From NCBI RefSeq assembly GCF_044704955.1, contig NC_091999.1, positions 29,698,001-29,762,000 of the forward strand: a stretch of DNA of 64,000 nucleotides, read 5' to 3'. The notes under the pieces were generated by a model, which ran no database searches, was not told the DNA's origin, and worked only from the letters and a program-made list of their open reading frames with translations. The position numbers and the translations under genes were made by a program. Below are positions 6,163-47,679 of this stretch, one piece after another (within the stretch, counting starts at the first letter, position 1; every line of letters starts with the position of its first letter). The stretch comes from Pristiophorus japonicus. Lineage: Eukaryota.

Positions 6163-6229
6163 GTTAATGATGTGGGATACAGGGCAAACTGTGATAAGGT
6201 GAGAAGTTATGTTCAATTTGTATCGAAAC

Positions 6230-6535: not shown

Positions 6536-6654
6536 CTCTGCAAATGCCAGGTTAGTGTGGATCTGACAGCAAAGAACTTGTTAAAATATAAGGACACTTT
6601 GCCTTTCTTAATCATTTATTTTGCAAGCAATGTCAATAAAATGCCTTCTCGTGA

Positions 6655-11217: not shown

Positions 11218-11218
11218 A

Positions 11219-11407
11219 TTAATTGCCGGTGCTTTTAGTGTCCCCCTCCCCTTTTATAGGGGGCACTTGGAGAAAAAATATGTTTTTTGCCCAAAAAAAA
11301 CCCCCAAAAAATACCACCAAAAATAAAAGGGCCTGTAAATGTTTGGTGTTTCCCCCAGATCGGGGGGGGGGTACGGTTTAATGTTTTTTGTTTACTCCCA
11401 AAAAGAG
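11219..11407 (+). mobile_element. Tx1-clade element, 3'-UTR-only fragment (unit 0 of the array)
   Basis: TTAATTGCCGGTGCTTTTAGTGTCCCCC...TTTACTCC.AAAAGAG matches the last ~160-190 bp of each full copy (18319-18475, 25459-25631, 32633-32786). Confidence 0.9.
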
Positions 11408-11425
11408 TTTCATGCACAAGGACCA
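11408..11425 (+). repeat. Junction repeat / putative target-site duplication copy 1 (TTTCATGCACAAGGACCA)
   Basis: The same motif recurs at 18476-18492, 25632-25649 and 32787-32804. The last copy is continuous with the host CR1 ORF2 and reads VLVHE on the minus strand. Confidence 0.88.
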
Positions 11426-12349
11426 ATGATGGAGCTTTGGAGGCGTGGCCTATGCACTTGGAGCCTGGCTGCTGTGAGAGAAGGAACTCCCTGCTTTAGC
11501 TTCTGTTTGGAAGGCCTGGAGTTAGCCCTGAGACCAGCCCAGGAACAGGAGGTAGGAAGGGGCTTCATTACCATTCATCTAGAGTGAGAGGAGGAGAGCC
11601 GAAGACTGCAACACCTTCATTATTTCAACAAAGAGTTGGAAAGAGGTGGAAAAAAGAACAACAACTTACCAGTGTGGAAGGAGGGAAAGACTTCTTCAGC
11701 CAAAGGTGGGTGTGTTTTGGTGCATTCACCAAAAAGACTTTGTTGTATCGGTGGGGGGAGGAAAGAAGACCAATCGAGGGCCAGAACATCGCGGGGGTGT
11801 GTGTGTGTGTGTGGAAGTGTGTGTGGGGGTCTTGCCTACAGCTAGGCCCACACACCACTGAAGCACCCCTCACCCAATTGCCTAGCCTGGGATAGCTGGA
11901 GCAACCAGGCTGAAGAAACTGAATCACCCTAATTAACATCGTTGGGAGTGTGTACCTGTGTGGCTCCAGCTGCCCCAGGTGAAGACATCTTCTCCCCCCA
12001 CCCGAAGATCACCCCAAAGACTGTTTTGTTTGCCATCTGGGGAATGCACCCACCCATTACTGTGAGGGGAGACCTGCCCTTGCAGCCTCCCTCTTTCCCA
12101 CACCCCATCACTCTGTCTCTCTCTCTGTCTCCCCCCTCTCTCTCTGAGAGCCTTTCCTCCCAATTGGAAAAAAAAGACAAGAACAATTAAGACAACTGAG
12201 CAGAGGGAGCAAGGCCCCTCCCCAATTGCAAACTAGGGGAGAGCAGTGCCTCTTTCAGAGCTGCCGCTGTTAAATACTTAAACGAGGCCAGTTAAGACCA
12301 TTAAGGCATGTGACTTTGGGGTGGGTGTCGCCCTTAAAGGGACCCCGTG

Positions 12350-14403
12350 ATGGCGACACCATCCACGCCGGTGGCAGGGCCAGCTAGGAATTATGTGCAG
12401 GCGGCGTCCACATCCACGGCACCTCCTACGCCTCCTGCTGACCTGCCACCATTCGGACTGATAACTAAAAAACACGGGGTCAAGGGCTACACTCACCCCA
12501 AAATGAGCATTGAGGAGTGCGCGCGGGCGATGGCTGGGGTAGTCGGCCCCTCGGCCATTGTCGCAGCCTCCAAGATGTCTGGGAAGGCTGTGTTCTTCCT
12601 GGGGTCGGAGCGACCGGTGTCCCTGGCCCTTGAAAAGGGGCTCACGGTGGGCGGGACGTTCCTGCCGGTGGACCCTCTCGAGGCCACCGCGCAGAGGGTC
12701 ATCATTTCAAACGTCCCGCCCTTTGTACCCGCTGAGCTCCTCCTCCCTCACCTACAACAACTGGGGGAGGTAAGGTCGGGTATCAACCCCATACCGCTCG
12801 GCCTCAGGGAGAACAGCCTGCGCCATGTGCTCTCCTTCCGCCGCCAGCTCTTTGACCGGCAGGCGCGGGAGGAGACGACGGAGGGCAATGCTAATGTGGT
12901 GCACGAGGGGACTGCCTACCGCAACTTCTGGACGTCGGATGGCGTGCGGTGCCATGCCTGCAGAGAGGTGGTGCATGTTCGCAAGAACTGCCCCGCCAAC
13001 AAGGCTGCCAAACCACCGAGGGCGTCCAAGGCTGGCGCCGCCGCCACCCCTCCCTCTAGTAGCGTCCGCTTGCCGGGAGCCGTAGGTGCGCGGGCATCGC
13101 CGGAGGCCTTTGTTTTCACGGCCGGAAAGAAGGCGCGGAAGAAGGCGAAACATCCCCTCGGTGCGCCAAACAACTTGTTTGCCGCGCTCGGCCAAACCCC
13201 GTCAGCTGCGAGCGCGGGGTGCCCTGAGCCGGTGCCCGAGCCCTTGACTAGTATCACAGAGGGGTTCGGGCGTGGGCAAGACAAGAAAAAGGGGGGAGTG
13301 GAGCGGGAGGCCTCGGCAGGCATGGGGGTCTCCCTGCCTCCGCGCACCCCCAGGAAAAAAAGGAGGCGTCGCTCCAATGAGATGGAGGGAGAACAACATC
13401 CCTCCGCGGAGGAGGCGGTGCCCGCCGCGTGTCCCGCGTCCCCCACCAGCGCCCCCAAGCTGCGCTGTAGGCGAGAGGAATCTGTCCCCGGGGAGGGTGA
13501 GGCAGTCGAGGCTGCCCAGCCGCTGCCTCCCGGGGATGACGTGGAAGATCTGCCTGTCGTGGGGGGCGTGGGGCCAGCGGAAGAATCCGTAGCCGCCGGG
13601 TCGAGCATCCCGGGGACTGAGGCGTGCGAGGACGAAAAGGCCGAACCTGAGCCCGCCCAGCAAATACCCAACTTGCCCCGGGATTTGCTCGACTCGGCAG
13701 AAGCTGACACTGCAGACAACTGTAATATACATCCACACGCTGGGCCGGGGGGTGGCGGCGGGAGGGGGAAGAACAACAACCCTCGCCCCCTACTTTGGAG
13801 CTGAGGGGCTTGGTGGACCTGGAGAATTTTCGTAACCAGGTCTCTCCGTGTTCCCCGGCTCCTGGGGCGGGGGAGGACCCCCTTCCGCTGTCGCCTCCCG
13901 ACCCAGCACCACTTTTAAAAGAGCTCAGTGGGGACTCCTCTGCCGACGATCCTGGGGGTGGGATCGGGGCGGAGCCAGGGCCGGATGGAGCGGCCGGGCC
14001 GTTTGCCGTACCTCGTGCGGTCGACGGGCCGGCTGCTTGCGGCGACCTCCCGGAGGGGGACGGAGACTGGGTGGGGGACGCAGGAGAAGATCTAGAGACC
14101 ATCGCCAGTGAGGCGGTGGATCTGCTCGCGGCCGCCGCTGAGACCCTCCTCATTCCTGTAAAGGAACTCCGGGACTTTTTGGTCCAGTGCCGGGGTCGCC
14201 GCGACCAAGCCCGTCTGGCCCTGGAAAGATGGTCTGAGCCAGTGTTGCTCGTCGCTTCCGTCCGCGCCGCAGCTAAAACCATGGCCGCGGGCGGGCCCTT
14301 ATCAAGAGCGCAAGGCCTTGAGCTGCGCCGGCTCAACGGGTTCCTCGCTGGGCTGCTGAAGGAGTGGAGGTCAACAAACGACTCCACTCCCCCCCCACAA
14401 TAG
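12350..14403 (+). pseudogene. Tx1 ORF1 (ZCCHC3/Tx1-ORF1-like with zinc knuckle), copy 1, frameshifted
   Basis: LITKKHGVK...SIEECARAMAGVVGPSAIVAASKMSGKAVFFL...ISNVPPFVP; knuckle CHACREVVHVRKNC; long Pro/Ala/Glu-rich tail; frameshift near 13765. Confidence 0.88.
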
Positions 14404-14433
14404 GTTAGGTAGAGGTTGCTCTATGCTTTTGCC

Positions 14434-17400
14434 ATGAAGATAACCATAGCCAGCCTCAACATCAACGGCGGCAGAGAGGCACGCCGTAGATTTGACAATT
14501 TTTCGCTCATGTGGGAGGGGAAATATGCGGTGTGCTTCCTGCAAGAAACCTACACCGTTCCGGGAGATGAAGCCACGTGGCTCCTGGAATGGCAAGGAGA
14601 GGTCCGCATGAGGCACCTCACTATCACTTCTAGTGGGGTGGCCATCTTGTTGGCCCCGCATTTTCAGCCGGAGATCTTGGGGGTCGAGGATCCCCTTCCA
14701 GGCCGCTTGCTGCACGTAACGGTTCGCCTGGGGGACGTGCCACTCCATCTCGTGAACGTGTACGCCCCTCAGCACGGCCAACAGCAAGTGCGCTTCTTCG
14801 AAGAAGTGTCCGCTCTTCTTGGCTCCGTCGACGTCGGCGACTGCATTGCCCTGTGGGGGGAATTTTAACTGCACCCTCGAGGCGATGGACCGCTCCAGTG
14901 CCCCGCAGAGCATGACGGTGATGGGGAAGTTGAGGGACCTGGTCGGGTCCTTCGACTTGGTGGACGTCTGGCGAAATCTCCATCCCGACTCCAGCGCCTT
15001 TACTTGGGTGAGGCCTGGAGTAGGATGGTCCAGAGTCGACCGCGTTTACGTGTCTCGGGCATACGTTTCCTGCGTCCTGGCGGCCTCCATGCGGCCGGTG
15101 CCGTGTTCGGACCACCACCTGGTGTGGGCGGAGCTCGCTTCGCTCCGCACGAGAACGGGGTCCGCGTACTGGCATTTTAACACCCGGCTGCTGGAGGACG
15201 TGCGGTTCCAGGACTCGTTCCGTCGTTTCTGGGCCGACTGGAGAAGGAAGCAGGGAGGCTTCCCCTCCTTGAGGCTATGGTGGGACGTGGGCAAGGCTCA
15301 CGTCCGTGTCTTCTGTCAAGAGTACGCGAGGGGGTCGACCAAGAGGCGGGCGGCCAGGGTTGGGCGCCTAGAAAAAGAGGTGCTCGACCTAGGGTCCCAT
15401 CTCAGTCAAGTCGTCGGGGACTCGGCCCTGCGGACGGTGTAAAAAGCGAAGAAGGCCGCGCTGAAGCACCTGCAGCTCGTCGGGTCCCGAGGCCAATTCG
15501 TAAGGTCGCGGATCCGGTTCCTGCGGGATCTGGACTGCGGCTCCCCCTTCTTCTACTCACTGGAAAAAAGACAGAGTGTCCGTAAGCAGCTCTTGACGCT
15601 GCTGGCCGATGACGTCTCTCTCGTCTCGGATCCGGAGGGCGTCAGCAACAGGGCCCGTGAACATTACGGGGCTCTGTTCTCTCCGGAGCCGTCCAGCGAG
15701 GAAGCGCATAGAGTTTTGTGGGAGGACCTGCCAAAGGTCATCCCGGAAGGCGCCGAAAATCTGGAAGTTCCGCTAAGCCTGGCGGCGCTGACCGGTGCCG
15801 ACCAGCTCTCGAGGGGAAAAGCCCCGGGGCTGGACGGGCTGACCGTGGAGTTCCACAGGGCGTTCTGGGACGTCCTGGGGGGTGACTACGCGCGGGTCCT
15901 GGGGGAAAGTCTGGTGACCGGGGAGATGCACCTCTCTTGGCGCAGGGCAGTCATCGTCCTGCTGCCTAAGAAGGGCGATCTCCGCCTCCTTAAGAACTGA
16001 CGCCCGGTCTCGCTCCTCAGCACAGACTACAAAATCTTCGCCAGGGTGATGTCTGCTCGCCTTGGTGCCGTGCTGGACCACATGATCCACCCCGACCAGT
16101 CCGACACGGTCCCGGGCCGGACAATCCACGATAACATCCATCTGGTCCGGGACCTCATCCATCATTCCCAGGAGGCTGGTCTGTCGGTCTCCTTCCTATC
16201 CCTCGACCAAGAGAAGGCGTTCGACAGGGTGGATCACGACTATCTGCTCGGAACTCTGCGCGCTTTCGGGTTCGGGATGCATTTCGTCGCCCAGATCTGA
16301 CTATTGTACGCTGCCGCGGAATGTCTGATTCAGGTTAACGGGTCCTTGACGGCGCCCCTTCGCTTTGGGAGAGGGGTGCACCAGGGATGCCCCATGTCCA
16401 GCCAGTTATATGCCATCTGCATGGAGCCTTTCCTGCACCTCCTGCGATGAGTTTGACGGGACTGGCTCTGCAAGGGCCGGGCGTGGAGGTCGTCCTCTCG
16501 GATTACGCCGATGACGTGCTCCTCGCGGTAGAGGATCCCGCTGACCTGCGGAGGATGCGTGAGTGCCAGGAGATTTACTCAGCTGCATCCTCCGCCAGAA
16601 TCAATTGGGAGAAATGCTCCGGACTCCTGGTGGGTCAGTGGCGGGTGGACTCCCTGCCGGAGGAGCTCAGGCTTTTTGCCTGGAGCACGACCCATCTCCT
16701 CTATCTGGGAGTCTACCTTAGCCCCGACGAGGAAGTGTGGGTGGCGAACTGGCAGGAGCTGGAGGCCAAGGTCGCCGCTCGCCTAGGCCGCTGGACAGGA
16801 CTGCTCCGAGTGCTGTCCTACAGCGGTCGAGCGCTAGTCATAAACCAGCTGGTGGCCGCCATGTTATGGTACCGGCTGGTCACTTTGACCCATCCCCCTA
16901 CGTTTGTCGCCAAGATACAGAAGAAGCTGGTGGACTTCTTCTGGAACAACAGGAAGCACTGGGTCTCTGCCGCGGTCTTGAGTCTCCCGCTTGGGGAGGG
17001 CGGTCAGTCGTTGGTGCGCGTCAGCGCGCAGCTCGCGACTTTCCATCTTCACGTCGAGCCTCCTCCTAGGTCGCGTGCTCTGGCAATGTATTTCTTTCGC
17101 CATCAGCACGGCCCCAACTACGACACGCAGCTCCTGTTTGTGAGTGTGGGGGGCGTCAGGACCGCCCTCCGGGAGCTGCCTGTCTTTTACAAGGAACTCA
17201 TCAGGGTCTGGAACAGAGTCTCCAGCAAGCCCAGCTCTGCACCAGCTGGAGTGGCGGCCGTCCTGCAGGAGCCGCTGCTCGCGAATCCGTACCTCCACGA
17301 CCGAGGTTTTTTGTGGCGGTCGGATGAGAAGGCTGTGGCTGGTGAGGTGACCAGGGTCCGGGACCTGCTCGATGGTGGAGGAGCGGGCTGCATGGCACCA

Positions 17401-18308
17401 GACCGCTGGCGCGGCGCCTAAATTCTGCCAACGTCCGCAACGAGGCCGATGCCATCGAGTCGCTAAAAAGAGCTCTGGGCCCTGACTCCGTTTGGTGCAT
17501 CGAGGAGGCTCAAGCACGTGGGGAGAGCCCTTCCGAACTGACCCCCGTCCGGACGGAATTCCTCCTTGGCGCCAAACCCCGGAACCTCCCTCGGGAGCAG
17601 GCGCCTCACAACTTGAGCCGCCCCGGGGAAATCCCCTCCGTGCCTTTCAGTTCCGCACGGAGGGGTTTCCTGTACGGGCTGCTCCTGCACACTCTCAACT
17701 TTGCCAACCTCGCCTGCCTTCCGGACACGCCATGGCGTACCATCTTGCCGTCCGGAGGAGGCGGGGGTCACCGATGGAGGGCACTCTACGCAGGCGTCCT
17801 CCCAGTATTTATCGGGGACTTGGCCTGGAGGGTGGTGCACGGAGCAATCCCGTGCAATAAATTTTTAAGCCGGTTCACGGGCTCCCAGGCCGCTTGCAAT
17901 TTCTGCCGCCTAGAAGAGTCCGTCTTCCATGTTTTTATTGAGTGCACGAGGTTGCAGTCCCTGTTTTGTTATTTAAAGGGGCTGCTCCTGAAATTCTGGC
18001 TGCACTTCAGTCCCACACTCCTGATCTTCGGGCGCCCTGTGCGGAGGGGAGCGGGTAGGTCCGAGGGCCTCCTCGTAGGACGGCTCCTGGGCACGGCCAA
18101 GGGGGCCATCAGCCGGTCCAGGCAGCGGGCGGTCGTGGGGGTCGTTCAGCCAGACTGCCTGCCTCTCTTCCGCGCATACATCCAGTCCAGGCTGTCCTTG
18201 GAGATGGAGCACGCGGTGTCCACTGGTACGCTCGCGGCCTTCCACGAGAGGTGGGCACCGGAGGGACTGGAGTGCATCATCACGCCTGGCAACCAAGTTT
18301 TAATTTGA
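14434..18308 (+). pseudogene. Tx1 ORF2 (APE endonuclease - RT - zf-RVT), copy 1, multiply disrupted
   Basis: MKITIASLNING, FLQET, NVYAP, SDH (APE domain); PGLDGLTVEF, SLDQEKAFDRVDH, YADD (RT); CNFCRLEESVFHVFIEC. Several stops and frameshifts. Confidence 0.93.
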
Positions 18309-18492
18309 CTTTATGTGTTTAATTGCCGGTGCTTTTCGTGTCCCCCTCCCCTTTTGTAGGGGGCACTTGGATAAAAATTCAATTCTGTGCCCAAAAAAAA
18401 AAGGACATTGTAAATGTTGGTGTTTCCCCCAGATCGGGGGCACGGTTTAATGTTTTTTGTTTACTCCTAAAGGAGTTTATGCACAAGGAACA

Positions 18493-21400
18493 ATGGTGGC
18501 GCTTTGGAGGCGTGGCCTATTCACTTGGAGCTGTGCTGCTGAGAGAGAAGGAACTCCCTGCTTTGCTCCTGTCTGGGAGGCCTTGAGTGAGCCCTGAGAC
18601 CAGCCCAGGAATAGGAGGAGGAAGGAAGGGGCTATATTACCATTCATCCAGAGGGATAGGAGGAGAGCAGAAGACTGCAACAACTTGATTAATTCTACAA
18701 AGTGTTGGAGAAAGGGGGAAAAAACAACTGTGTGGAAGGAGGGAAAGACTTCTTCAACCAGAGGTGGGTGTGTTTTGGTGCATTCCCCAATAGACTTTGT
18801 TGTATCGGTGGGGGGAGGAAAGAAGACCTATCGAGGGCCGGAACATCGCGGAGGGTGTGTGTGTGTGTGTGGAAGTGTGTGTGGGGGTCTTGCCTACAGC
18901 TAGGCCCACACTCCACTGAAGCACCCCTCCCCCATTGCCTAGCCTGGGATAGCTGGAGCTACCAGGCTGAAGAAACTCAATCACCCTAATTAACATGGTT
19001 GGGAGTGTGTACCTGTGTGGCTCCAGCTGCCCCAGGTGAAGACATCTTCTCCAGCCACCCGAAGACCACCCCAAAGACTGTTTTGTTTGACATCTGGGAG
19101 TGCACCCACCCATTGCTGTGAGGGGAGACATGCTCTCGCAGCTTCCCTCTTTCCCATCCCCCCTCTTCCTCTATCTCTCTCTCTCTGTCTCTCCCCTCTC
19201 TCTCTGAGAGCCCTTTCCTCCTAATTAAAATAAACAAACAATTAAGACAACTGAGCAGAGGGAGCAAGGCCCCTCCCCAACTGCCAACTAGGGGAGAGGT
19301 GTGCCTCTTTCAGAGCTCCCTCTGTTCAAATATTTAAACGAGGCCATTTAAAACCATTAAGGCCTGTGACTTTGGGCTGGGTGTAGCCCTTAAAGGGACC
19401 CCGTGATGGCGACCGCATCCACGCCGGTGGCAGGGCCAGCTAGGGCATATGCGCAGGCGGTGTCCACATCCACGGCACCTCCTGCGCCTCCTGCTGCCCT
19501 GCCACCATTCAGACTGATAACTAAAAAACACGGGGTCAAGAGCTACACTCACCCCACAATGAGCATTGAGGAGTGCGTGCGGGCGATGGCTGGGGTAGTC
19601 GGCACTTCGACCATTGTCGCAGCCTCCAAGATGTCTGGGAAGGCCGTGTTCTTCCTGGGATCGGAGCGGGCGGTGTCCCTGGCCGTCGAAAAGGGGCTCA
19701 CGGTGGGCAGGACGTTCCTGCCGGTGGACTCTCTCGAGGCCACCGCGCAGAGTGTCATTCTATCGAACGTCCCGCCCTTTGTTCCCGCTGAGCTCCTCCT
19801 CCCTCACCTACACCAACTGGGGGAGGTAAGGTCGGGGATCAACCCCATGCCGCTCGGCCTCAGGGAGAACAGCCTGCGCCATGTGTTCTCCTTCCGCCGC
19901 CAGCTCTTTGTCCGGCTGGCGCGGGAGGAGACGATGGAGTGCAATTTTAATGTGGTGCACGAGGGGACTGCCTACCGCGTCTTCTGGACGTCGGACGGCG
20001 TGCGGTGCCATGCCTGTAGGGAGGTGGGACACGTTCGCAAGAACTGCCCCGCCTCCAAAGCCGCCAAACCACCGAAAGCGGCCAAGGCTGGCGCCGCCAC
20101 CACCCCTCCCCCTAGTTGCGTCCGCGTGCCGGGAGCTGTAGGTGCGCGGGCATCGTCGGGGGCCTTTGTTTTCACGGCCTCCGGCGGGGGGGAGGGAGAG
20201 CGTCCGACCGGAAGGAAGGCGCAGAAGAAGACGAAACATCTCGAGGCGGGTCCCTTCGGTGCGCCAGACAATCTGTTTATTGCGCTCAGCCCAACCCCGT
20301 CACCGGCGAGCGCGGGGTGCCCTGAGCCCGTGCCCGAGCCCTCGATCAATACCGCAGAGGGGTTCGGGCGCGGACATGATAAGTAAAAGTGGGGAGTGGA
20401 GCAGGAGGCCTCGGCAGACATGGGGGTCTCCTTGCCTCCGCTCACTCCCAGGAACAAAAGGAGGCGCTGCTCCAATGAGGCGGAGGGGGAACAACATCCC
20501 TCCGTGGAGAAGTCGGTGCCCGCCGCGTGTCCCGCGTCCCCCACCAGCGCCCCCAAGCTGCGCTGTAGGCGAGACGAGTCTGTCCCCGGGGAGGGTGAGA
20601 CAGTCGAGGCTGCACAGCCGCTGCCTCCCGGGGATGGCGTGAAAGTTCTGCCTGTCGTGGGGGGCGTGGGGCCAGCGGAAGAATGTGTAGCCGCTGGGTC
20701 GAGCGTCCCGGGGACTGAGGCGGGCGGGGCCGAAAAGGCCAAACCTGAGCCCGCCCAGTCAATACCCAACTTCCCCCGGGATTTGCTCGACTCGGCAAAA
20801 ACTGACACTGCAGACAACTGTAATATCCATCCACACGCTGGGCCGGGGGGTGGCGGTGGGGAGGGGGAAGAACAACAACCCTCGCCCCCTACTTTGGAGC
20901 TGAGGGACTTGATGGACCTGGAGAATTTCCTAAACCAGGTCTCTCCATGTTCCCCGGATGTTGGGGCGGAGGAGGAACCCCTTCCGCTGAAGCTTCCCGA
21001 CCCAGCACCAATTTTAGAAGAGCACAGTGGGGACTCCTCTGCCGACGATTCTGGCGGTGGGATTGGGGCAGAGCCAGGGCCAGATGGAGCGGCCGGGCCG
21101 TTTGCCGTATCTCGTGCGGTCGACGGGCCGGCTGCTAGAGGCAACCTCCCGGAGGGGGACGGGGACTCGGTGGAGGACGCGGGAGAAGATCTAGAGTCCA
21201 AAGCCAGTGAGGCGGTGGATCTGCTCGCGGCCGCCGCTGAGCCCCTCCTCATTCCTGCAAAGGAACTCCGGGACTTTTTCGTCCAGTGCCGGGGTCACCG
21301 CGACCAAGCCCGTCTGGCCCTGGAAAGATGGTCCGAGCCGGGGCTGCTCGTCGCGTCCGTCCGCGCCGCCGCTAAAACCATAGCCGCGGGCGGGCCCTTA

Positions 21401-24400
21401 TCAAAGGCTCAAGGCCTTGAGCTGCGCCGGCTCCAAAAGTTCCTCGCTGGGCTGCTGAAGGAGTGGAGGTCAACAAACGACTCCACTCCCCCTCCCACAA
21501 TAAGTTAGGTAGAGGTTGCACTATGCTCTAGTCATGAAGATAACCATAGCCAGCCTCAACATCAACGGCGGCAGAGAGGCACGCCGTAGATTTAACAATT
21601 TTTCGCTCCTGCGGGAGGGAAAATATGTGGCGTGCTTCCTGCAAGGAACCCACACCGATCTGGGAGACGAAGCCACGTGGCTCCTGGAATGGCAAGGAGA
21701 GGTCCGCATGAGCCACCTCACCGCCACTTCGAGTGGGGTGGCCATCATGCTGGCCCCGCGGTTTCAGCCGGAGATCTTGGGGGTCGAGGAGCCCGTGCCA
21801 GGCCGCTTGCTGCACGTAACGGTTCGCCTGGGGGACGTGCCGCTCCATCTCGTGAACGTGTACGCCCCTCAGCCCGGCCCGCAGCAAACGCGCTTCTTCG
21901 AATAGGTGTCCGCTCTTCTTGGCTCCGTCGACGTCGGCGACTGCATTGTCCTCGGGGGGGATTTTAACTGCACCCTCGAGGCGAGGGACCACTCCGGTGC
22001 CCCGCAGAGCATGACGGCGATGGAGAAGTTTAGGGACCTGATCGGGTCCTTCGACTTGGTGGACGTCTGGCGAAATCTCCACCCAAACTCCAGCGCTTTT
22101 ACTTGGGTGAGGCCTGGAGTAGGATGGTCCAGAGTCGACCGCGTTTACGTGTCTCGAGCGTACGTTTCCTGCGTCCCGGCGGCCTCCATGCGGCCGGTGC
22201 CGTGTTCGGACCACCAACTGGTGTGGGCGGAGCTCGCTTCGCTCCGCGCGAGGACGGGGTCCGCATAGTGGTATATTATCAACCAGCTGCTGGAGGACGT
22301 ACGGTTCCAGGACTCGTTCCATCGTTTCTGGGCCGACAGGAGAAGGAAGCAGGGGGGCTTCCCCTCCTTGAGGCTATGGTGGGACGTGGGTAAGGCTCAC
22401 GTCCGCGTCTTCTGTCAAGAGTACGCGAGGGAGTCGACCAAGAGGCGGGCGGCCAGGGTCGGGCGCCTAGAAAAAGAGGTGCTCGAACTGGAGTCCCGTC
22501 TCGGTCAAGTCGTTGGTTCCCCGGCCCTGCGGACGGTGTACAAAGCGAAGACGGCCGCGCTGAAGGACCTGCAGCTCGTCGGGTCCCGAGGCGCGTTCGT
22601 GAGGTCGCGGATCCGGTTCCTGCGGGATCTGGACCGCGGCTCCGCCTTTCTTCTAGTCGCTGGAAAAAAGAGAGGGTGTCCGTAAGCAGATCTTGACGCT
22701 GCTGGCCGACGACGGTTCTCTCTCTCGGATCCGGAGGGCGTCAACAACAGCGCCCGTGAATATTACGGGGCTCTGTTCTCTCCGGATCCTTCCAGCGAGG
22801 AAGTGCATAGAGTTTAGTGGGAGGACCTGCCGAAGGTCAGCCCGGAGGGCGCCGAAAATCTGGAAGCTCCGCTAAGCCTGGCGGAGCTGACCGGTGCCCT
22901 CGACCGGCTCTCGAGGTGAATAACCCCCGGGGCTGGACGGGCTGACCGTGGAGTTCCACAGGGCGTTCTGGGACGTCCTGGGGAGCGACAACGCGCGCGT
23001 CCTGGGGGAAAGTCTGGCGAGCGGGGAGATGCCCCTCTCTTGGCGCAGGGCAGTCATCGTCCTCCTGCCTAAGAAGGGCGATCTCCACCTCCTTAAGAAC
23101 TGGCGCCCGGTCTCCCTCCTCAGCACGGACAACAAAATCATTGCCAGGGCGAAGTCTGCTCGCCTTGGTGCCGTGCTGGACAACATGATCCACCCCGACC
23201 AGTTCTACACGGTCCCGGGCCGGACAATCCACGATAACATCCATCTGGTCCGGGACCTCATCCATCATTCCCAGGAGGCTGGTCTGTCGGACGCCTTCCT
23301 ATCCCTTGACCAAGAGAAGGCGTTCGACAGGGTGGATCACGACTATCTGCTCGGAACTCTGCGCGCTTTCGGCTTCGGGACTCATTTCGTCACCCGGATC
23401 CGACTTTTGTACGCCACCGTGGAGTGTCTGATTAAGGTTAACGGGTCCTTGACGGCGCCCCTTCGCTTTAGGAGAGGGGTGCGCCAGGGATGCCCCATGT
23501 CCGGCCAGTTATATGCCGTCTGCGTGGAGCCTTTCCTGCGCCTCTTGCGGACGAGGTTGACGGGACTGGCTCTGCAAGGGCCGGGCGTGGAAGTCGTCCT
23601 CTCGGCTGATGCCGATGATGTGCTCCTCGCGGTAGAGGATCCCGATGACCTGCGGAGGATGCGTGAGTGCCAAGAAATTTACTCGGCTGCATCCTCCGCC
23701 AGAATCAACTGGGAGAAATATTCCTGACTCCTGGTGGGTCAGTGGCGGGTGGACGCCCTGCCTGAGGAGCTCAGGCCTTTTGCCTGGAGCACGACGCATC
23801 TCCTCTATCGGGGAGTCTACCTTAGCCCCGACGAGGGAGCCTGGCCGGCGAACTGGCAGGAGCTGGAGGCCAAGGTCGCCGCTCGCCTAGGGCGCTGGAC
23901 AGGACTGCTCCGAGTGCTGCCCGACAGGGGTCGAGCGCTAGTCATAAACCAGCTGGTGGCCGCAATGCTGTGGTACCGGCTGGTCACTTTGACCCCTCCC
24001 CCTGCGTTTGTCACCAAGATCCAGAAGAAACTGGTGGACTTCTTCTGGAACAACAGGAAGCACTGGGTCTCTGCCGCGGTCTTGAGTCTACCGCTTGGGG
24101 AGGGCGGTCAGTCTGTGGTGTGCGTCAGCGCCCAGCTCGCGACATTCCATCTTCAGACCCTGCAGAGATACCTTTACGTTGAGCCCCCTCCTCGGTGGCA
24201 TGCTCTGGTGATGTATTTCTTCCGCGAGCAGCACGGCCTCAACTACGACACGCAGCTCCTGTTTGTGAGTGTGGGGGGCGTCAGGACAGCCCGCCGGGAG
24301 CTGCCTGTCTTTTACAAGGAACTCATCAGGGTCTGGAACAAAGTCTCCACCAAGCGCAGCTCTCCACCAGCTGGAGTGGCGGCCGTCCTGCAGGAGCCGC

Positions 24401-25631
24401 TGCTCGGAAATCCGTACCTCCACGACCAAGGTTTTAGGTGGCGGTCGGACGAGAGGGCTGTGGCTGTTGAGGTCACCAGGGTCAGGGACCTGCTCGATGG
24501 CGGAGGAGCAGGCTGGATGGCGCCAGACACGCTGGCGCGGCGTCTAAATTCTGCCAACGCCCGCTAAGCGGCCGATGCCATCGATCGCTAAAAACAGCTC
24601 TGGGCCCCGACTCCTTTAGGTGCATCGAGGAGGCTCAAGCACGTGGGGAGATCCCGTCTGAACTGACCCCCGTCTGGACGGAATTCCTCTTTGGCGCCAA
24701 ACCACGGAACCTCCCTTAGGAGCAGGCGCCTCACAACTTGTGCCGCCTCGAGGAAATCTCCTCCATGCCTTTCAGTTCCGCGCGGAGGGGTTTCCTGTAT
24801 GGGCTGCTCCTACACACTCTCAACTTTGCCATCCTCGCCTGCCGTCCTTACACGCCATGGCGTACCATCTTGCCGTGCGGAGGAGGCGGGGGTCCTCGAT
24901 GGAGGGCACTCTACGCAGGGGTCCTCCCACTATTTGTCGGGGACTTGGCCTGGAGGGTGGTGCACGGAGCAGTGCCGTGCAATAAATTTTTAAGCCGGTT
25001 CACGGGCTCCCAGGCTGCCTTCAATTTCTGCGGTCTGGAAGAGTCCGTGTTCCATGTTTTTATTGAGTGCACGTGGTTGCAGCCCCTGTTCTGTTATTTA
25101 AAGGGGCTGCTCCTGAAATTCTGGCTGCACTTCAGTCCCACACTCCTGATCTTCGGGCACCCTGTGCGGAGGGGAGCGCGTAGGTCCGAGGGCCTCCTCG
25201 TAGGACTGCTCCTGGGCACGGCCAAGTGGGCCCTCAGCCGGTCCAGGCAGCAGGCGGTCGAGGGGTTCGTTCAGCCAGACTTCCTGCCTCTCTTCTGCGC
25301 ATACACCCGGTCCAGGGTGTCCTTGGAGATGGAGCACGCGGTGTCCACCGGTACGCTCGCGGCCTTCCGTGAGAGGTGGGAACCGAAGGGACTGGAGTGC
25401 ATCATCACGCACGGCAACCAAATTTTAACTTGATTTTATATTTTTAAGTTCATTTGTTTTAATTGCCGGTGCTTTTAGTGTCCCCCTTGGCTTTTATAGG
25501 GGGTACTTGGAAAAAAAATTGATTCTGTGCCCCAAAAAAACCCCAAAAATTAAAAAAAGGGACTTGTAAATGTTGGTGTTTCCCACAGATCGGGGGGCAC
25601 GGTTTAATTCTTTTGTTTACTCCTAAAAGAG
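18493..25631 (+). mobile_element. Tx1-clade element, full-length copy 2 (~7.14 kb, disabled)
   Basis: Colinear with copy 1. ORF1 19406-21508 (CHACREVGHVRKNC; stop at 20384-86). ORF2 21534-25433 has several stops, and YADD is mutated to DADD. Confidence 0.93.
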
Positions 25632-25649
25632 TTTGATGCACAAGGACCA

Positions 25650-28600
25650 ATGGTGGAGCTTTGGAGGCGTGGCCTATTCACTTGGAGCTGTGCTGCTGAG
25701 AGAGAAGGAACTCCCTGCTTTGCTCCTGCCTGGGAAGCCTTGACTGAGCCCTGAGAACAGACCAGGAATAGGAGGAGGAAGGAAGGAGCTTCATTACCAT
25801 TTATCCAGAGTGAGAGGAGGAGAGCAGAAGACTGCAACACCATTATTATTCCTACGAAGAGTTCGAGAGAGGGGAAAAAAAAAGAACAACAACTTACCAG
25901 TGTGGAAGGAGGGAAAGACTTCTTCAACCAGAGGTGGGCGTGTTTTGGTGCATTCACAAAAAATACTTTGTTGTATCGGTGGGGGGGAGGAAAGAAGACC
26001 AATCGAGGGCCGGAACATCGCGGGGTGTGTGTGTGTGTGTGTGTTGAAGTGTGTGTGGGGGTCTTGCCTACAGCTAGGCCCACACACCACTGAAGCACCC
26101 CTCCCCCATTGCCTAGCCTGGGATAGCTGGAGCTACCTGGCTGAAGAAAGTCAATCACCCTAAATAACATCGTTGGGAGTGTGTACCTGTGTGGCTCCAG
26201 CTGCCCCAGTTGAAGACATCTTCTCCACCCACCCGAAAACCACCCCAAAGACTGTTTTGTTTGACATCTGGGGAGTGCACCCACCCATCGCTGTGAGGGG
26301 AGACCAGCCCTCGCAGCTTCCCTCTTTCCCACCCCGCCTGGCTCTTTCACTCTTTCTCTGTCTCTCCCCTCTCTCTCTGAGAGCCCTTTCCTCACAAGTG
26401 AACAAAAACAAGAACAATTAAGACAACTGAGCAGAGGGAGCAAGGGCCCTCCCCAATTGCCAACTAGGGGAGAGGAGTGCCTCTTTCAGAGCTTCCTCTG
26501 TTCAAATGCTTAAACGAGGCCATTTAAGACCATTAAGGCCTGTGACTTTGGGGTGGGTGTAGCCCTTAAAGGGACCCCGTGATGGCGACCCCATCCACGC
26601 CGGTGGCAGGGCCAGCGAGGACATATGCGCAGGTGGCAACCGCTTCCACGGCACCTCCTGTGCCTCCTGCTGCCCTGCCACCATTCAGACTTATAGCCAA
26701 GAAGCACGGGGTCAAGAGCTACACTCCCCCCACAATGAGCATTGAGGAGTGCGTGCGGGCGATGGCTGGGGTAGTCGGCCACTCGGCCATTGTCGCAGCC
26801 TCCAAGATGTCTGGGAGTGCCGTGTTCTTCCTGGGGTCGGAGCGGGCGGTGTCCCTGACCATTGAAAAGGGGCTCACGGTGGGCGGGACCTTCCTGCCGG
26901 TGGACCCTCTCGAGGCCACTGCGCAGAGGGTCATCATTTCAAACGTCCCGCCCTTTGTTTCCGCTGAGCTCCTCCTCCCTCACCTACACCAACTGGGGGA
27001 GGTAAGGTCGGGGATCAACCCCATACCGCTCGGCCTCAGGAAGAACAGCCTGCGCCATGTGTTCTTCCGCCATCAGCTCTTTGTCCGGCTGGCGCGGGAG
27101 GAGACGACGGAGGGAAGTTTTAATGTGGTGCACGAGGGGACTGCCTACCGCGTCTTCTGGACGTCGAACCGCGTGCGGTGCCATGCCTGCAGGGAGGTGG
27201 GGCACGTTCGCAAGAACTGCCCCGCTTCCAAAGCCGCCAAACCACCGAGGGTGGCCAAGGCTGGCGCCGCCGCCACCCTCCCCCAAGTAGCGTCCACGTG
27301 CCGGAAGCTGTAGTTGGGCGGGCATCGTCGGAGGCCATTGTTTTCACGGCCTCCGGCGGCGGGGAGGGAGAGCGTCCGACCGGAAAGAAGGCACGGAAGA
27401 AGACGAAAGATCTAGAGGCGGGACCCCTCAGTGCGCCAGACAACCTGTTTACCGCGCTCGGGCCAACCCCGTCACCGGCGAGATGGGGGGTGCCCTGAGC
27501 CCGTGCCCGAGCACTTGACCAGTATCACAGAGGCGCTGGGGCGCGGGCAAGAAAAGAAAAAGAGGGGGGTGGAGCGGGAGGCCTCGGCAGACATGGAGGT
27601 CTCCCTGCCTGCACGCCCTCCCAGGAACAAAAGGAGGCGCCGCACCAATGAGGCGGAGGGGGAACAACATCCCTCCGCGGAGGAGTCGGTGCCCGCCGCG
27701 TGTCCCGCGTCCCCCACCAGCGCCCCCAAATTGCGCTGTAGGCGGGAGGAATCTGTCCCCGGGGAGGGTGAGGCAGTCGAGGCTGCCAGGCCTCTGCCTC
27801 CCGGGGATGGTGTGAATGATCTGCCTGTCGTGGGGGGCGTGGGGCCAGCGGTGGAATGCGTAGCCGCCGGGTCGAGCGTCCCCGGGACTGAGGCAGGCGG
27901 GGCCGAACAGGTCGAACCTGAGCCCGCCCAGCTTTTAATTATCTGCCCCCTAGAGTCGCTCGGCCCAGAAGAAACTGAAAATGGATTAATTTTAACGATT
28001 CTGTACACGCTGGGCCGAGGGGTGGCGGCGGGGAGGGGGAAGAACAACAACCTTCGCCACCAACTTTGGAGCTGGGGTACTTGGAGGACCTGGAACATTA
28101 CTTTGACCAGGTCTCTCCGTGTTCCGCGGTACCTGGGGCGGAGGAGGAACCCCATCCGCTGTCGCTTCCCGACCCAGTACCAATTTTACAAGAGCCTAGT
28201 GGGGACTCCTCTGCCGACGATCCTGGGGGTGGGATCGGGGCAGAGCCGGGGCCAGATGGAGCGGCCGGGCTCTTTGCCGTACCTCGTGCGGTCGAGGGGC
28301 CGGCTGCTGACGGCGACCTCCCGGAGGAGGACGGGGACTCGGTGGAGGACGCGGGTGAAGATCTCGAGTCCATCGCCAGTGAGGCGGTGGATCTCCTCGT
28401 GACCGCCGCTGATTCCCCCCTCATTCCCGTAGAGGAACTCCGGGACTTTTTGGTCCAGAGCCTGGGTCGCCGCAACCGAACCCATCTGGCCCGGGAAAGA
28501 TGATCCGAGCCGGGGCTGCTCATCGCTTCCGTCCGCACCGCCGCTAAAACCATGGCCGCGGGCGGGCCCTTATTAAAGGCGCAAGGCCTTGAGCTGCGCC

Positions 28601-31600
28601 GGCTCAAAAGGTTCCTCGCTGGGCTGCTGAAGGAGTGGAGGTCAACAAACGACTCCATTCCCCCCACCCACAATTGGTTAGGTAGAGGTTGCACTATGCT
28701 CTAGTCATGAAGATAACCATAGCCAGCCTCAACATCAATGGCAGCAGAGAGGCACGCCGTAGATTTAACAATTTTTCGCTCCTGCGGGAGGGGAAATATG
28801 TGGCGTGCTTCCTGCAAGAAACCCACACCGTTCCGGGAGACGAAGCCACGTGGCTCCTGGAATGGCAAGGAGAGGTCCGCATGAGCCACCACACTGCCAC
28901 TTCTAGTGGGGTGGCCATATTGCTGGCCCCGCATTTTCAGCCGGAGATCTTGGGGGTCGAGGAGCCCGTGCCAGGCCGCTTGCTGCACGTAACGGTTCGC
29001 CTGGGGGACGTGCCGCTCCATCTCGTGAACGTGTACGCCCCTCAGCCCGGCCCGCAGCAGACGCGCTTCTTCGAATAGGTGTCCGCTCTTCTTGGCTCCG
29101 TCGACGTCGGCGACTGCATTGTCCTAGGGGGGGATTTTAACTGCACCCTCGAGGCGAGGGACGGCTCCGGTTCCCCGCAGTGCATGACGGCGATGGAGAA
29201 GTTGAGGGACCTGGTCGGGTCCTTCGACTTGGTGGACGTCTGGCGAAATCTCCACCCCGACCCCAGCGCCTTTACTTGGGTGAGGCCTGGAGTTGGATGG
29301 TCTAGAGTCGACCGCCTTTACGTGTCTCGGGCATACGTTTCCTGTGTCCCGGCGGCCTCCATGCGGCCGGTGCCGTGTTCGGACCACCACCTGGTGTGGG
29401 CGGAGCTCACTTCGCTCAGCGCGAGGACGGGGTCCGCATAGTGGCATTTTAACAACCAGCTGCTGGAGGACGTGCAGTTCCAGGACTCGTTCCGTCGTTT
29501 CTGGGCCGACTGGAGAAGGAAGCAGGGCGGGCTTCCCCTCCTTGAGGCTATGGTGGGACGTGGGCAAGGCTCACGTCCGCGTCTTCTATCAAGAGTACGC
29601 GAGGGGTTCCACCAAGAGGCGGGCGGCCAGGGTCGGGCGTCTAGAAAAAGAGGTGCTCGAACTGGAGTCCCGTCTCGGTCAAGTCGTCGGGGACCCGGCC
29701 CTGCGGACGGTGTACAAAGCGAAGGAGGCCCCGCTGAATGACCTGCAGCTCGTCGGGTCACGAGGCGCGTTCGTGAGGTCACGGATCCGGTTCCTGCGGG
29801 ATCTGGACCGCGGCTCCCGCTTCTTCGACTCGCTGGAAAAAAGGCAGAGTGTCCGTAAGCAGCTCTTGACGCTGCTGGCCGACGACGGCTCTCTCGTCTC
29901 GGATCCGGAGGGCGTCAACAACAGGGCCCGTGAATATTACGGGGCCCTGTTCTCTCCGGAGCCGTCCAGTGAGGAAGCGCGTAGAGTTTTGTCGGAGGAC
30001 CTGCCGAAAGTCAGCCCGGAGGGCGCCGAAAATCTGGAAGCTCCGCTAAGCCTGGCGGAGCTGACCGGCGCCCTCGACCGGCTCTCGAGGGGAAAATCCC
30101 CGGGGCTGGACGGGCTGACCGTGGAGTTCCACAGGGCGTTCTGGGACGTCCTGGGGGGCGACTATGCGCGGGTCCTGGGGGAAAGTCTGGCGACCGGGGA
30201 GATGCCCCTCTCTTGGCGCAGGGCAGTCATCGTCCTGCTGCCTAAGAAGGACGATCTCCGCCTCCTTAAGAACTGGCGCACGGTCTCCCTCCTCAGCACG
30301 GACTGCAAAATCTTCGCCAGGGCGATGTCTGCTTGCCTTGGTGCCTAGCTCGACCACATGATCCACCCCGACCAATCCTACACGGTCCCGGGCCGGACAA
30401 TCCATGATAACATCCATCTGGTCCGGGACATCATCCATTATTCACAGGAGGCTGGTCTGCCGGTCGCCTTCCTATCTCTCGACCAAGAGAAGGCGTTCGA
30501 CAGGGTGGATCACGACTATCTGCTCGGAACTCTGCGCGCTTTTGGGTTTGGGACTCATTTCGTCGCCCGGATCCGACTTTTGTACACCGCCGCGGAGAGT
30601 CTGATTAATGTTAATGGGTCCTTGACGGCGCCCCTTCGCTTTGGCAGAGGGTTGCGCCAGGGATGCGCTATGTCCGGCCATTTATATTCCGTCTGCGTGG
30701 AGCCTTTCCTGCGCCTCCTGCGGACGACGTTGACGGGACTGGCTCTACAAGGGCCGGGCGTAGAGGTCGTCCTCTCGGCTTACGCCGATGATGTGCTCCT
30801 CACGGTAGAGGATCCCGCTGACCTGCGGAGGATGTGTGAGTGCCAGGAGATTTACTCAGCCGCATCCTCCGCCAGAATCAACTGGGAGAAATGTTCCAGA
30901 CTCCTGGTGGGTCAGTGGCGGGTGGACTCCGTGCCGGAGGAGCTCAGGCCTTTTGCCTGGAGCACGACCCATCTCCTCTATCTGGGAGTCTACCTTAGCC
31001 CCGACGAGGAAGTGTGGGTGGCGAACTGGCAGGAGCTGGTGGCCAAGGTCGCCGCTCGCCTAGGGCGCTGGACAGGACTGCTCCGAGTGCTGTCCTGCAG
31101 GGGTCGAGCGCTATTCATAAACCAGCTTGTGGCCGCCATGTTGTGGTACCGGCTGGTCACTTTGACCCCTCCAACTGACTTTGTCGCCAAGATACAGAAG
31201 AAGCTGGTGGACTTCTTCTGGAACAACAGGAAGCACTGGGTCTCTGCCGCGGTCTTGAGTCTCCCGCTTGGGGAGGGCGGTCAGTCGTTGGTGTGCGTCA
31301 GCGCCCAGCTTGCAACTTTCCATCTTCAGACCCTGCAGAGATACCTTTACGTCGAGCCCCCTTCTAGGTGGCGTGCTCTGGCGATGTATTTCTTCCGCCA
31401 GCAGCACGGACCCAACTACGACACGCAGCTCCTGTTTGTGTGTGTGGGGGGCGTCAGTACCGCCTTCCGGGAGCTGCCTGTCTTTTACAAGGAACTCATC
31501 AGGGTCTGGAACAAAGTCTACACCAAGCGGAGCTCTCCACCGGCTGGAATGGCGGCCGTCCTGCAGAAGCCGCTGCTCGGGAATCCGTACCTCCACGACC

Positions 31601-32786
31601 GAGGTTTTAGGTGGCGGTCGGATGAGAGGGCTTTGGCTGGTGAGGTGACCAGGGTCAGGGACCTGCTCGATGGCGGAGGAGCGGCTTGGATGGCGCCAGA
31701 CACGCTGGCGCGGCGCCTAAATTCCGCCAACGTCCGCCGCGCGGCTGATGCCATCGAGTCGCTAAAAACAGCTCTGGACCCCGACTCCATTAGGTGCATC
31801 GAGGAGGCTCAAGCATGCGGGGAGATCCCATCCGAACTGACCCCCGTCCGGACGGAATTCCTCATCGGCGCCAAACCCCGGAACCTCCCTCGGGGGCCGG
31901 CGCCTCACAACTTGAGCCGCCTCGGGGAAATCCCCTCCGTGCCTTTCAGTTCTGCGCGGAGGGGTTTCCTGTTCGGGCAGCTCCTACACACTCTCAACTT
32001 TGCCATCCTTGCCTGCCGTCTGGACACGCCATGGCGTACCATCTTGCCATCCAGAGGAGGCGGGGGACCCCGATGGAGGGCACTCTACGCAGGGGTCCTC
32101 CCACTATTTGCCGGGGACTTGGCCTGGAGGGTGATGCACGGAGCAGTGCCGTGCAATAAATTTTTAAGCCGGTTCATGGGCTCCCAGGCCGCCTGCAATT
32201 TCTGCGGTCTGGAAGAGTCCGTGTTCCATGTTTTTATTGAGTGCACGAGGTTGCAGCCCCTGTTTTGTTATTTAAAGGGGCTGCTCCTGAAATTCTGGCT
32301 GGACTTCAGTCCCACACTCCTGATCTTCGTGCACCCTGTGCGGAGGGGAGCGGGTAGGTCCGAGGGCCTCCTCGTAGGACTGCTCCTGGGCACGGCCAAG
32401 GGGGCCCTCAGCCGGTCCAGGCAGCAGGCGGTCGAGGGGGTCGTTCAGCCAGACTGCCTGCCTCTCTTCCGCGCATACATCCGGTCAAGGGTGTCCCTGG
32501 AGATGGAGCATGCGGTGTCCACCGGTACGCTCGTGGCCTTCCGCAAGAGGTGGGCACCGGAGGGACTGGAGTGCATCATCACGCCCAGCAACCAAATTTT
32601 AACTTGATTTCATATTTTTAAGTTAATTTGTTTTAATTGCCGGTGCTTTTAGTGTCCCCCACCCCTTTTATAGGGGGCACATGGACAAAAAATATGTTTT
32701 TGTGCCAAAATTAAACCTTGTAAATGTTGGTGTTTCCCCCAGATCGGGGGGCACGGCTTAATGTTTTTTGTTTGCTCCTAAAAGAT
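25650..32786 (+). mobile_element. Tx1-clade element, full-length copy 3 (~7.14 kb, disabled)
   Basis: Colinear with copies 1 and 2. ORF1 26582-~28681 is frameshifted. ORF2 28707-32607 has an open 749-aa RT and C-terminal stretch (YADD, CNFCGLEESVFHVFIEC) but stops in the N-terminal part. Confidence 0.93.
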
Positions 32787-34016
32787 TTTCATGCACAAGG
32801 ACCACCAGGTCCCTCTGCATCGCAGCATGTTATAATTTCTCCCCATTCAAATAATATTCCCTTTTGCTGTTTTTTTCCCTCAAGGTGGATGACCTCACAC
32901 TTTCCGAGATTGTATTCCATCTGCAAAATCTTAGCCCATTCTCTAACCTATCTAAATTTCTTTGCAGCCTCTCTGTGTCCTCTGCACAACCCGTTTTCCC
33001 ACTAATCTTTGTGTCATCTGCAAATTTTGTCACACTATACTCTGTCCCCTCTTCCAGGTCATCTATATATATTGTAAACAGTTGTAGTCCCAGCCCCGAT
33101 CCCTGTGGCACACCACTAACCACCGATTTCCAACCCAAAAAGGACCCATTTATCGCGACTCTCTGCTTTCTGTTAGCCAGCCAATTCTCTATCCATGCTA
33201 ATACTTTTCCTCTGACTCCACGTGTCTTTATCTTCTGCAGTAACCTTTTGTGTGGCACCTAATCGAATGCCTTTTGAAAATCTAAATACAGCACATCCAT
33301 CGGTACACCTGTATCCACCATGCTCGTTATATCCTCAAAGAATTCCAGTAAATTAGTTAAACATGATTTCCCCTTCATGAATCCATGCTGCGTCTGCTTG
33401 ATTGCACTATTCCAATCTAGATATCCCGCTCTTTCTTCCTTAATGATAGTTTCAAGCATTTTCCCCACTACAGATGTTAAACTAACCGGCCTATAGTTAC
33501 CTGCCTTTTGCCTGCCCTCTTTTTTAAACAGAGGTGTTACATTTGCTGCTTTCCAATCCGCTGGTACCTCCCCAGAGTCCAGAGAATTTTGGTGGATTTT
33601 AACGAATGTATCTGCTATAACTTCCGCCATCTCTTTATCCCTGCGATGCATTTCATCAGGACCGGGGGACTTTTCTACCTTGAGTCCCATTAGCCTGTCC
33701 AGCACTACCCCCCTAGTGATAGTGATTGTCTCAAGGTCCTCCCTTCCCACATTCCTTTGACCAGCAATTTCTGGCATGGTTTTTGTGTCTTCCACTGTGA
33801 AGACCGAAGCAAAATAATTGTTTAAGCTCTCAGCAATTTCCACATTTCCCATTATTAAATCCCCCTTCTCATCTTCTAAGGGACCAACATTTACTTTAGT
33901 CACTCTTTTTCGTTTTACATATCGGTAAAAGCTTTTACTATCCGTAATCATGTTTTGCGCAAGTTTACCTTTGTAATCTATCTTTCCTTCCTTTATTGCT
34001 TTCTTAGTCATTCTTG
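32787..34016 (-). mobile_element. Host CR1 LINE, 5' (RT) segment; 5'-truncated
   Basis: Minus-strand ORFs 33259-34020 and 32830-33258: KSPGPD, ANVTPLFKK, NYRPVSLTSVVGK, LDFQKAFD, SGVPQGS, FADDTK, continuing into QRDLVVLVHE at the array junction. Confidence 0.93.
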
Positions 34017-34067
34017 TCAATGAGAATGTCTCGATTGCATTTCAGTTCTTAAATAAAAAACAATAAA
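34012..34067 (+). pseudogene. IGHM: Displaced end of the IgM secretory tailpiece (S-C-Q-stop) with poly(A) signals
   Basis: TCT TGT CAA TGA (34012-34023) lies right at the CR1 5' end and completes ...LMDTF(N)SCQ*; the shark mu tail as recalled is LMDTINSCQ. AATAAA at 34052 and 34062. Confidence 0.85.
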
Positions 34068-47615: not shown

Positions 47616-47679
47616 ATTCCATGCTCTGAGTAAAATAAACGATAGCACGGCGTGTGACTATCTGCATGGCATTGGTCGC

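Follow-up and report, generated by a model that had tools for sequence, protein, structure and literature searches.

R1 and R2 are site-specific long interspersed nuclear elements (LINEs) that insert at a fixed nucleotide of the 28S ribosomal DNA (rDNA), a host gene kept functional by selection, and their 5' junctions are variable, with truncation and filler; R2 uses a restriction-like endonuclease, R1 falls in an APE clade other than Tx1, and template jumping has been documented for the reverse transcriptase (RT) of R2. Within the Tx1 clade, Mutsu and Dewa have targets among 5S ribosomal RNA and transfer RNA (tRNA) arrays. Here we analyse a 64,000-nucleotide stretch of Pristiophorus japonicus DNA (NC_091999.1, positions 29,698,001 to 29,762,000; hereafter the window) in which Tx1-clade units are stacked inside a LINE of the CR1 clade. 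The array resembles R1 and R2 in its apparent use of a fixed nucleotide of a multicopy target and in variable 5' junctions, but their target is a host gene in the 28S rDNA, and the endonuclease type (R2) or the APE clade (R1) differs. Keno, Kibi and Koshi are further Tx1-clade families with multicopy targets such as U2 small nuclear RNA (snRNA) and microsatellites (Kojima and Fujiwara, 2004, as cited in PMC4494074). All five of these Tx1 families land, like the present element, in multicopy sequence; however, theirs consists of host multicopy genes or simple repeats rather than the open reading frame (ORF) of a transposon.

Tx1 families that target other transposons are also known, the targets being the piggyBac-type Tx1D, Mariner-N4_AMi and long terminal repeat (LTR) elements (PMC4494074). 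Tx1-Mar and SINEU-3 of crocodilians insert into Mariner-N4_AMi with a 16-bp target-site duplication (TSD), AGGTTCCCATCAGCAT; tandem copies of SINEU-3 sandwich the TSD and were interpreted as sequential insertions, target duplication and truncation both occur, and a family was called target-specific when the same repeat was present in >20% of its flanks (Kojima, 2015; PMC4494074). The likeness to the present case is close (Tx1 clade, an apparently fixed site in an abundant transposon, a long putative TSD and tandems around it), although the target there is a Mariner DNA transposon in a crocodilian host and here a LINE in an elasmobranch. Tx1L of Xenopus laevis inserts into Tx1D (Christensen et al., 2000, as cited in PMC4494074); it encodes the best named protein homologue of our element (47% identity), and shares with it an APE-type endonuclease and, apparently, another transposon as target, but target sequence and target class differ from the CR1 site. 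Tx1-8_Crp and Tx1-4_AMi are likewise aimed at retroelements, in their case specific LTR retrotransposons (PMC4494074) as opposed to the coding region of a non-LTR CR1. In the open-access papers searched, with Repbase and Dfam outside the scope of the search, we found no Tx1 family with a CR1 or other LINE target, nor such a family in cartilaginous fishes. A first-pass annotation of the window had suggested that a Tx1 family with this target was new; this stands for the LINE target as far as those papers go, but the claim is narrower than first put because transposon-targeting Tx1 families with a 16-bp TSD and tandems have been published (PMC4494074).

Three Tx1 units of 7.05-7.14 kb (u1, u2 and u3) lie head to tail within an antisense, 5'-truncated CR1, preceded by a fragment of a fourth copy in the same orientation, much as the first-pass annotation had described (a 3' fragment and three ~7.1-kb copies). 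It had also placed a motif at the 3' end of each unit, which we found at all four places with its coordinates off by no more than one position. The features of the locus, in window coordinates, are as follows.

10528-11218, minus strand: 3' part of the host CR1 (ORF2 residues ~753-958 and downstream sequence); left junction ...CAAACTAAC, then A
11219-11408, plus strand: 5'-truncated Tx1 copy, the last 190 bp of the 3' untranslated region (UTR), from alignment with the three full 3' ends
11409-11425, plus strand: motif copy 1, TTCATGCACAAGGACCA, 0 mismatches
11426-18475, plus strand: Tx1 unit 1 (u1), 7050 bp; putative ORF1 ~12347-14403, ORF2 14434-18290
18476-18492, plus strand: motif copy 2, 2 mismatches
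18493-25632, plus strand: Tx1 unit 2 (u2), 7140 bp; ORF2 21534-25409
25633-25649, plus strand: motif copy 3, 1 mismatch
25650-32787, plus strand: Tx1 unit 3 (u3), 7138 bp; ORF2 28707-32607
32788-32804, plus strand: motif copy 4, 0 mismatches; the host CR1's own sequence, with minus-strand codons ...V L V H E
32788-34014, minus strand: 5' part of the host CR1 (ORF2 residues ~349-760, including the RT domain)
60689-60705, plus strand: unoccupied homologue of the target site, in a second CR1 that belongs to another subfamily; 11/17 motif positions match

The motif was taken as the 17-mer TTCATGCACAAGGACCA on the plus strand, and all four copies in the window were counted; four matches against 0.02 expected, a number that none of 100 shuffled sequences reached, rule out chance as the origin of its recurrence. 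Alignment of the four junctions showed the same Tx1 3' end (...TTTGTTTACTCCTAAAAGAGT) followed each time by the motif; after the motif comes a common 5' start (ATGGTGGAGC..., ATGGTGGAGCTTTGGAGG...) in three junctions and CR1 in the fourth. There is just one motif copy at the CR1 junction, so that Tx1 ends exactly where the CR1 motif starts. On the left, where the 190-bp fragment meets CR1, 9 bp of the target are deleted and there is no TSD. Full-length pairwise identity among u1, u2 and u3 is 90.5-91.3%, the GC content of the array is ~62% against a background of ~40%, and blastn found no other Tx1 piece in the window outside the array. As a separate observation, the array opens with its own 3' end and motif (11219-11425), and this segment forms 207-bp direct repeats with the 3' end of each unit; such repeats could drive unequal exchange.

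The motif is CR1 ORF2 coding sequence, as both the reading frame of a CR1 protein (P0121) and an unoccupied copy of the site in another genome indicate, in agreement with the first-pass annotation's view of the last motif copy. In tblastn, residues 349-760 of P0121 matched 34014-32782 and residues 753-958 matched 11244-10636, at 58-61% identity; blastn comparison with the other CR1 in the window matched 10528-11210 of the left part of the host as well as its right part, and RVT_1 was detected in the host CR1 ORF at 33259-34020. The flanks translate on the minus strand to QRDLVVLVHE on the right and VSLQVQQVISKANGMLAF on the left, reproducing the earlier translations; P0121 reads QRDLGVLVHESLKVSMQVQQ at this point. 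The target lies ~13 codons past the Pfam RT match, within the conserved ...QRDLGVLVHESLKV... block of CR1 ORF2. A contig of a second organism (run X5, record 29), in which the CR1 is unoccupied, has 95% identity from 32788 into CR1, and the letters that precede this position, CTGCTGCACCTGCAAACTAAC TTTTTGGGA, are the left flank of the window plus 9 bp that are absent here; the unoccupied order is thus ...CAAACTAAC-TTTTTGGGA-TTCATGCAC..., and the host sequence missing at the left junction is TTTTTGGGA, 9 bp or three codons, the number at which the earlier estimate of about three lost codons had arrived. The empty site reconstructed in this way can be aligned gap-free with the second CR1 of the window (60640-60790). 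No further CR1 was found upstream of the 5' part of the host (about ORF2 residue 349), and the host copy is therefore 5'-truncated. It was dead on arrival and never functional, so the suggestion that the insertion had inactivated a CR1 does not apply at this locus.

Both the host and the element at 57461-61299 belong to the CR1 clade, judging by their domain layout and their homology to bird and turtle LINE RT proteins, the names of which do not include CR1; the best named matches of the CR1 belong to sharks and rays, namely Pristiophorus, Hypanus, Chiloscyllium and Mobula. The second element is near-intact, with a GDSL/OSK-type esterase in ORF1 and Exo_endo_phos and RVT_1 in ORF2.

Several further observations concern CR1 in the window. 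ORF2 of the near-intact element is open for 795 amino acids, and homology runs past the stop at 60787-60789 to ~61299. Directly upstream of its ORF1, at 56436-57204, lie 12.4 copies of a 62-bp unit with 98% identity, and this array may be the monomeric 5' UTR, or the promoter, of a young CR1. At 4657-5126 there is an older, divergent fragment of CR1, 37-47% identical at the protein level to residues 653-811 of P0121; it covers the region of the homologous site without interruption. A 38-bp unit is repeated 7.8 times at 6243-6538, next to a CR1 protein match at 6203-6277; we take the unit to encode the C-terminal motif of CR1 (...LEYCVQFWSP...), and the repeat looks like a minisatellite born from the 3' end of CR1 ORF2.

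The inserted element is, on its protein homology, a Tx1-clade LINE of a cartilaginous fish of ~7.1 kb, with a 5' UTR of ~0.9 kb, a putative ORF1 of ~2.1 kb, an ORF2 of ~3.9 kb and a 3' UTR of ~0.2 kb. ORF2 has the order APE-type endonuclease, RT, C-terminal zinc domain. Its longest open piece, 749 amino acids in u3 (30358-32607), carries RVT_1 (E 1e-26) and zf-RVT, the latter also being detected in u1. The best named homologue of this piece is the Xenopus laevis Tx1 149-kDa protein YTX2_XENLA (47% identity, 99% coverage, 723 bits); the closest protein, P0001 (ENA), has 64% identity, and numerous proteins named 'transposon TX1' by their sources are among the top matches. The nearest solved structure, human L1 ORF2p, scored 96 bits and R2 proteins ≤45, which places the RT nearer to the Tx1 references than to L1 or R2 as judged by bit scores rather than by a clade tree. 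All three units are colinear with residues 1-1292 of the Xenopus Tx1 ORF2, and the earlier assignment to the Tx1 clade is upheld by this and by the score of YTX2_XENLA.

ORF2 starts with MKITIASLNINGG...FLQET at 14434, 21534 and 28707, and its N-terminal 144 amino acids have 45% identity to the Tx1L endonuclease, with the LN.NG and QET motifs kept; the endonuclease region was assigned by this alignment. Open pieces of 244-485 amino acids lie upstream of ORF2 in every unit, and the sole family match in this ORF1 region was a weak zf-CCHC (E 0.002, under the curated cut-off). The 3' UTR has conserved GC hairpins on either side of a variable A/C-rich spacer, and lacks poly(A); a consensus fold of the four 3' tails predicted hairpins without covariation, the sample being four near-identical sequences.

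All Tx1 copies in the array are dead, with frameshifts at positions that differ from unit to unit: ORF2 of u1 has three frameshifts and three stops private to it, and that of u3 one frameshift. The first-pass annotation had treated the units as independent insertions, and here the comparison of the units gave a different answer. Two derived TAG codons in the endonuclease region are shared by u2 and u3, the first at 21903-21905 and 29076-29078, where u1 has GAA and the outgroups keep E, and the second at 22266-22268 and 29439-29441, where u1 reads TAC and the Y of YWHFN is kept in every outgroup; u1 carries neither. Parallel mutation is not credible, since one of the two stops takes two base changes to form and a CpG transition would produce neither; the pair implies that u2 and u3 descend from a single, already defective template. 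By comparison with u2 and u3, u1 is shorter by 30, 12 and 21 bp at three places in the coding sequence, each time in frame, and by 15 bp in the 3' UTR. The coding stretches absent from u1 are found in u2 at 20178-20207, 20240-20251 and 24155-24175. Since these lengths are all multiples of three they hint at a different functional source variant for u1, and the comparison suggests that u1 came from a source other than that of u2 and u3; together with the differing frameshifts, the in-frame indels point to u1 and the ancestor of u2 and u3 as separate insertions.

Across ~7,000 aligned sites the three units have 292, 257 and 295 private substitutions, respectively. Such near-equal divergence would mean that the formation of the array took up no more than about 5% of its age. 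At sites where u3 differs from the majority letter in the genome, most of the differences are private to it; a few recur in u2 alone and none in u1 alone. Polarising against outgroup proteins gave 8, 17 and 6 'shared-derived' sites for the three possible groupings, counts that are noisy near frameshifts and leave the u2-u3 branch unsized. Our reading is that the array goes back to some three priming events, all at one nucleotide, and a single duplication, with four independent hits excluded. The shared stops show that arrays of this kind also gain units through the copying of dead ones, so that their size exaggerates how many retrotransposition events took place.

Recurrence of the junction was examined in read contigs aligned to 32000-33300, from three source-organism runs (one sample) and one run of the second organism. 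Between 45,000 and 83,000 short contigs per run aligned, a flood which implies that the Tx1 and CR1 repeats are both very abundant. Among the joints listed for the source organism, beyond which there are 72 further rows, at least nine distinct ones have 13-15 nt of the motif followed by Tx1 truncated at differing internal positions. They leave the reference at 32800-32802 (after TTCATGCACAAGG, GGA or GGAC), carry 0-6 filler letters, are all on one strand and re-enter Tx1 at 32112, 32332, 32365, 32395, 32404, 32408 (twice, with different fillers), 32583 and 32780. A motif joined to truncated Tx1 does not occur in the window, which has only the four motif copies, so the joints come from other loci. 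Logan contigs are built from 31-letter words, and a shared motif of 17 nt should therefore not join sequences falsely. This combination of a common strand, variable end points, filler and many points of truncation is characteristic of the 5' junctions that 5'-truncated LINE copies form. These data support the view that the motif precedes Tx1 5' ends wherever a copy is truncated, as a target or TSD would; a fixed site is supported whether the Tx1 3' end or CR1 lies before the motif in these contigs, and the site specificity of the family would accordingly extend beyond the window. The proposal of fixed-site targeting made by the first-pass annotation gains from the recurrence of this junction in at least nine joints from other loci. 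Exact-pattern scans for the 3'-end-plus-motif junction gave no match in metagenome and genome contig collections, a blank that is expected because these hold little or no shark DNA.

One further feature of the contigs concerns their depth, which is not usable as a copy number: it is about the same over the end of Tx1 ORF2 (32000-32660) as over the CR1 flank, and only a few per cent of this over the final ~130 bp of the 3' UTR. The drop points to several Tx1 subfamilies with ORF2 in common but with tails, and possibly targets, of their own.

We consider it probable that the array belongs to a site-specific Tx1 family which targets a stretch of ~17 bp in CR1 ORF2, and that it was built by about three priming events and one copying of a defective unit. 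The target would lie in a part of CR1 that is retained in most 5'-truncated copies. The endonuclease would nick the CR1 sense strand at ...CATGAA^TCCCAA (window plus strand, A^TTCATGCAC), with the priming nick placed at the left edge of motif copy 4 (32788), and the 3'-OH of this nick would prime reverse transcription on the 3' end of the element (...AAAAGAGTT); priming from the CR1 sense strand would leave Tx1 antisense to CR1, as is found. The second strand would be cut 13-17 nt downstream, and a staggered cut of this size would duplicate the motif on both sides of the insert and make each copy a target again. The three priming events would have given the 190-bp fragment (with its 9-bp target deletion), u1 and the ancestor of u2 and u3. 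One copying of the dead unit would then have produced the u2-u3 pair, most simply by unequal exchange between the 207-bp repeats; mobilisation in trans, a multi-unit read-through RNA, or template jumping of the RT onto RNAs with a read-through motif would be alternatives for this step. The anatomy of the array, the CR1 origin of the motif, the return of the junction at other loci and the nonsense codons common to u2 and u3 are shown directly; that the endonuclease determines specificity, that the nicks fall exactly where they are placed here, and that the TSD is the cause of stacking is what we infer. Regeneration of the target by the TSD had been put forward in the first-pass annotation as the reason for stacking; as stated this is unsupported, and it stands as one account beside read-through RNA with template jumping.

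Several points weigh against this reconstruction. The units are almost equally diverged, which would hardly be expected had a single locus been hit several times independently out of a very large number of CR1 copies, and the TSD is absent at the leftmost junction. No contig from another locus was seen to run from the Tx1 3' end across the motif and on into CR1, in a region (32660-32791, the end of the 3' UTR) that is thinly covered; the joints show the motif followed by truncated Tx1, not CR1, and alone would fit the motif as the 3' end of the element. Pfam Exo_endo_phos gave no score on the short, broken pieces of ORF2. In a rival account the family would be site-specific but the array would have arisen in essentially one step, by a process other than re-targeting of the TSD. 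A multi-unit RNA from another array could have been reverse-transcribed and 5'-truncated in its upstream unit, leaving the 190-bp fragment; the RT could have moved from one RNA to the 3' end of another that carried the read-through motif; or one or two insertions could have been amplified by unequal exchange, for which the 207-bp direct repeats are well suited. The near-star phylogeny of the three units, the two nonsense codons common to u2 and u3, by which at least one unit copies a dead one, and the leftmost junction with its 9-bp deletion and lack of a TSD all fit such an origin, as do template jumps with the filler letters at the read joints. However, u1 has three in-frame coding indels and lacks the stops of u2 and u3, which argues against one origin at the DNA level, and every unit has private frameshifts; a complementary DNA of 21.6 kb would be exceptional, joints to many truncation points genome-wide need many separate events, and the SINEU-3 tandems have been published as sequential insertions (PMC4494074). 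We regard a one-step origin as unlikely, if worth keeping in view.

Much less probable is that there is no site specificity, the motif being merely the last 13-17 nt of an element that landed once in CR1 by chance, was then duplicated in tandem and has random flanks elsewhere. The duplicate nature of u2 and u3 would agree with this, as would the joints. The first-pass annotation had held that a motif followed elsewhere by non-CR1 sequence would speak for it, and in the joints the Tx1 body does follow; yet they are read as 5' junctions rather than as a fixed 3' end, since the nine listed share one orientation and have end points at 32800-32802 with filler. A further objection is that the unoccupied CR1 contig contains the motif and that the motif is in frame with the CR1 protein. 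The single motif copy at the CR1 junction, where the element ends as the CR1 motif begins, tells against it as well. Long tandem repeats are error-prone in assemblies, and a collapsed or expanded repeat could be wrongly laid out as a tandem, but the units are distinguishable by ~9% divergence and private indels, and the source-organism runs hold 37-43% of the sampled words of 10000-13000; an artefact of this kind is scarcely credible. Site-specific insertion into CR1 with one later copying step remains the reading that we prefer.

A bolder proposal goes further, and we hold it tentatively, at a little short of an even chance: that this is the first described LINE with an endonuclease that reads a fixed ~17-bp site in ORF2 of another LINE (CR1), that its long TSD recreates the target on both sides and so seeds its own landing pads and head-to-tail arrays, that multi-unit RNAs could carry defective units along (and hence the shared stops of u2 and u3), and that it is a self-propagating LINE-in-LINE hyperparasite with many copies in elasmobranch genomes. 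If the CR1 target is correctly assigned, the list of Tx1 targets (snRNA, 5S and tRNA genes, microsatellites, DNA transposons and LTR elements) would extend to the coding region of a non-LTR element, and would do so in elasmobranchs, a vertebrate lineage with little-curated transposons. It would also offer a natural case of an APE-type endonuclease reading a long (13-17 bp) site, which is of relevance to engineered site-specific retrotransposon insertion. For annotation, it would explain a recurrent, GC-rich, multi-kb tandem in CR1 that could otherwise be mistaken for a satellite or a segmental duplication.

Elsewhere in the window, an ORF of 299 amino acids for a rhodopsin-family G-protein-coupled receptor is open at 51784-52683 (7tm_1, E 1e-17), with no PDB sequence match at 1e-10, and is preceded by a 43-bp tandem repeat (51230-51679). 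In the interval 45561-48917, a degenerate (CCTCT)n tract of ~2 kb with extreme GC skew gives way to a 35-bp satellite; the satellite has 35.7 repeats and a higher-order period of 209-244 bp.

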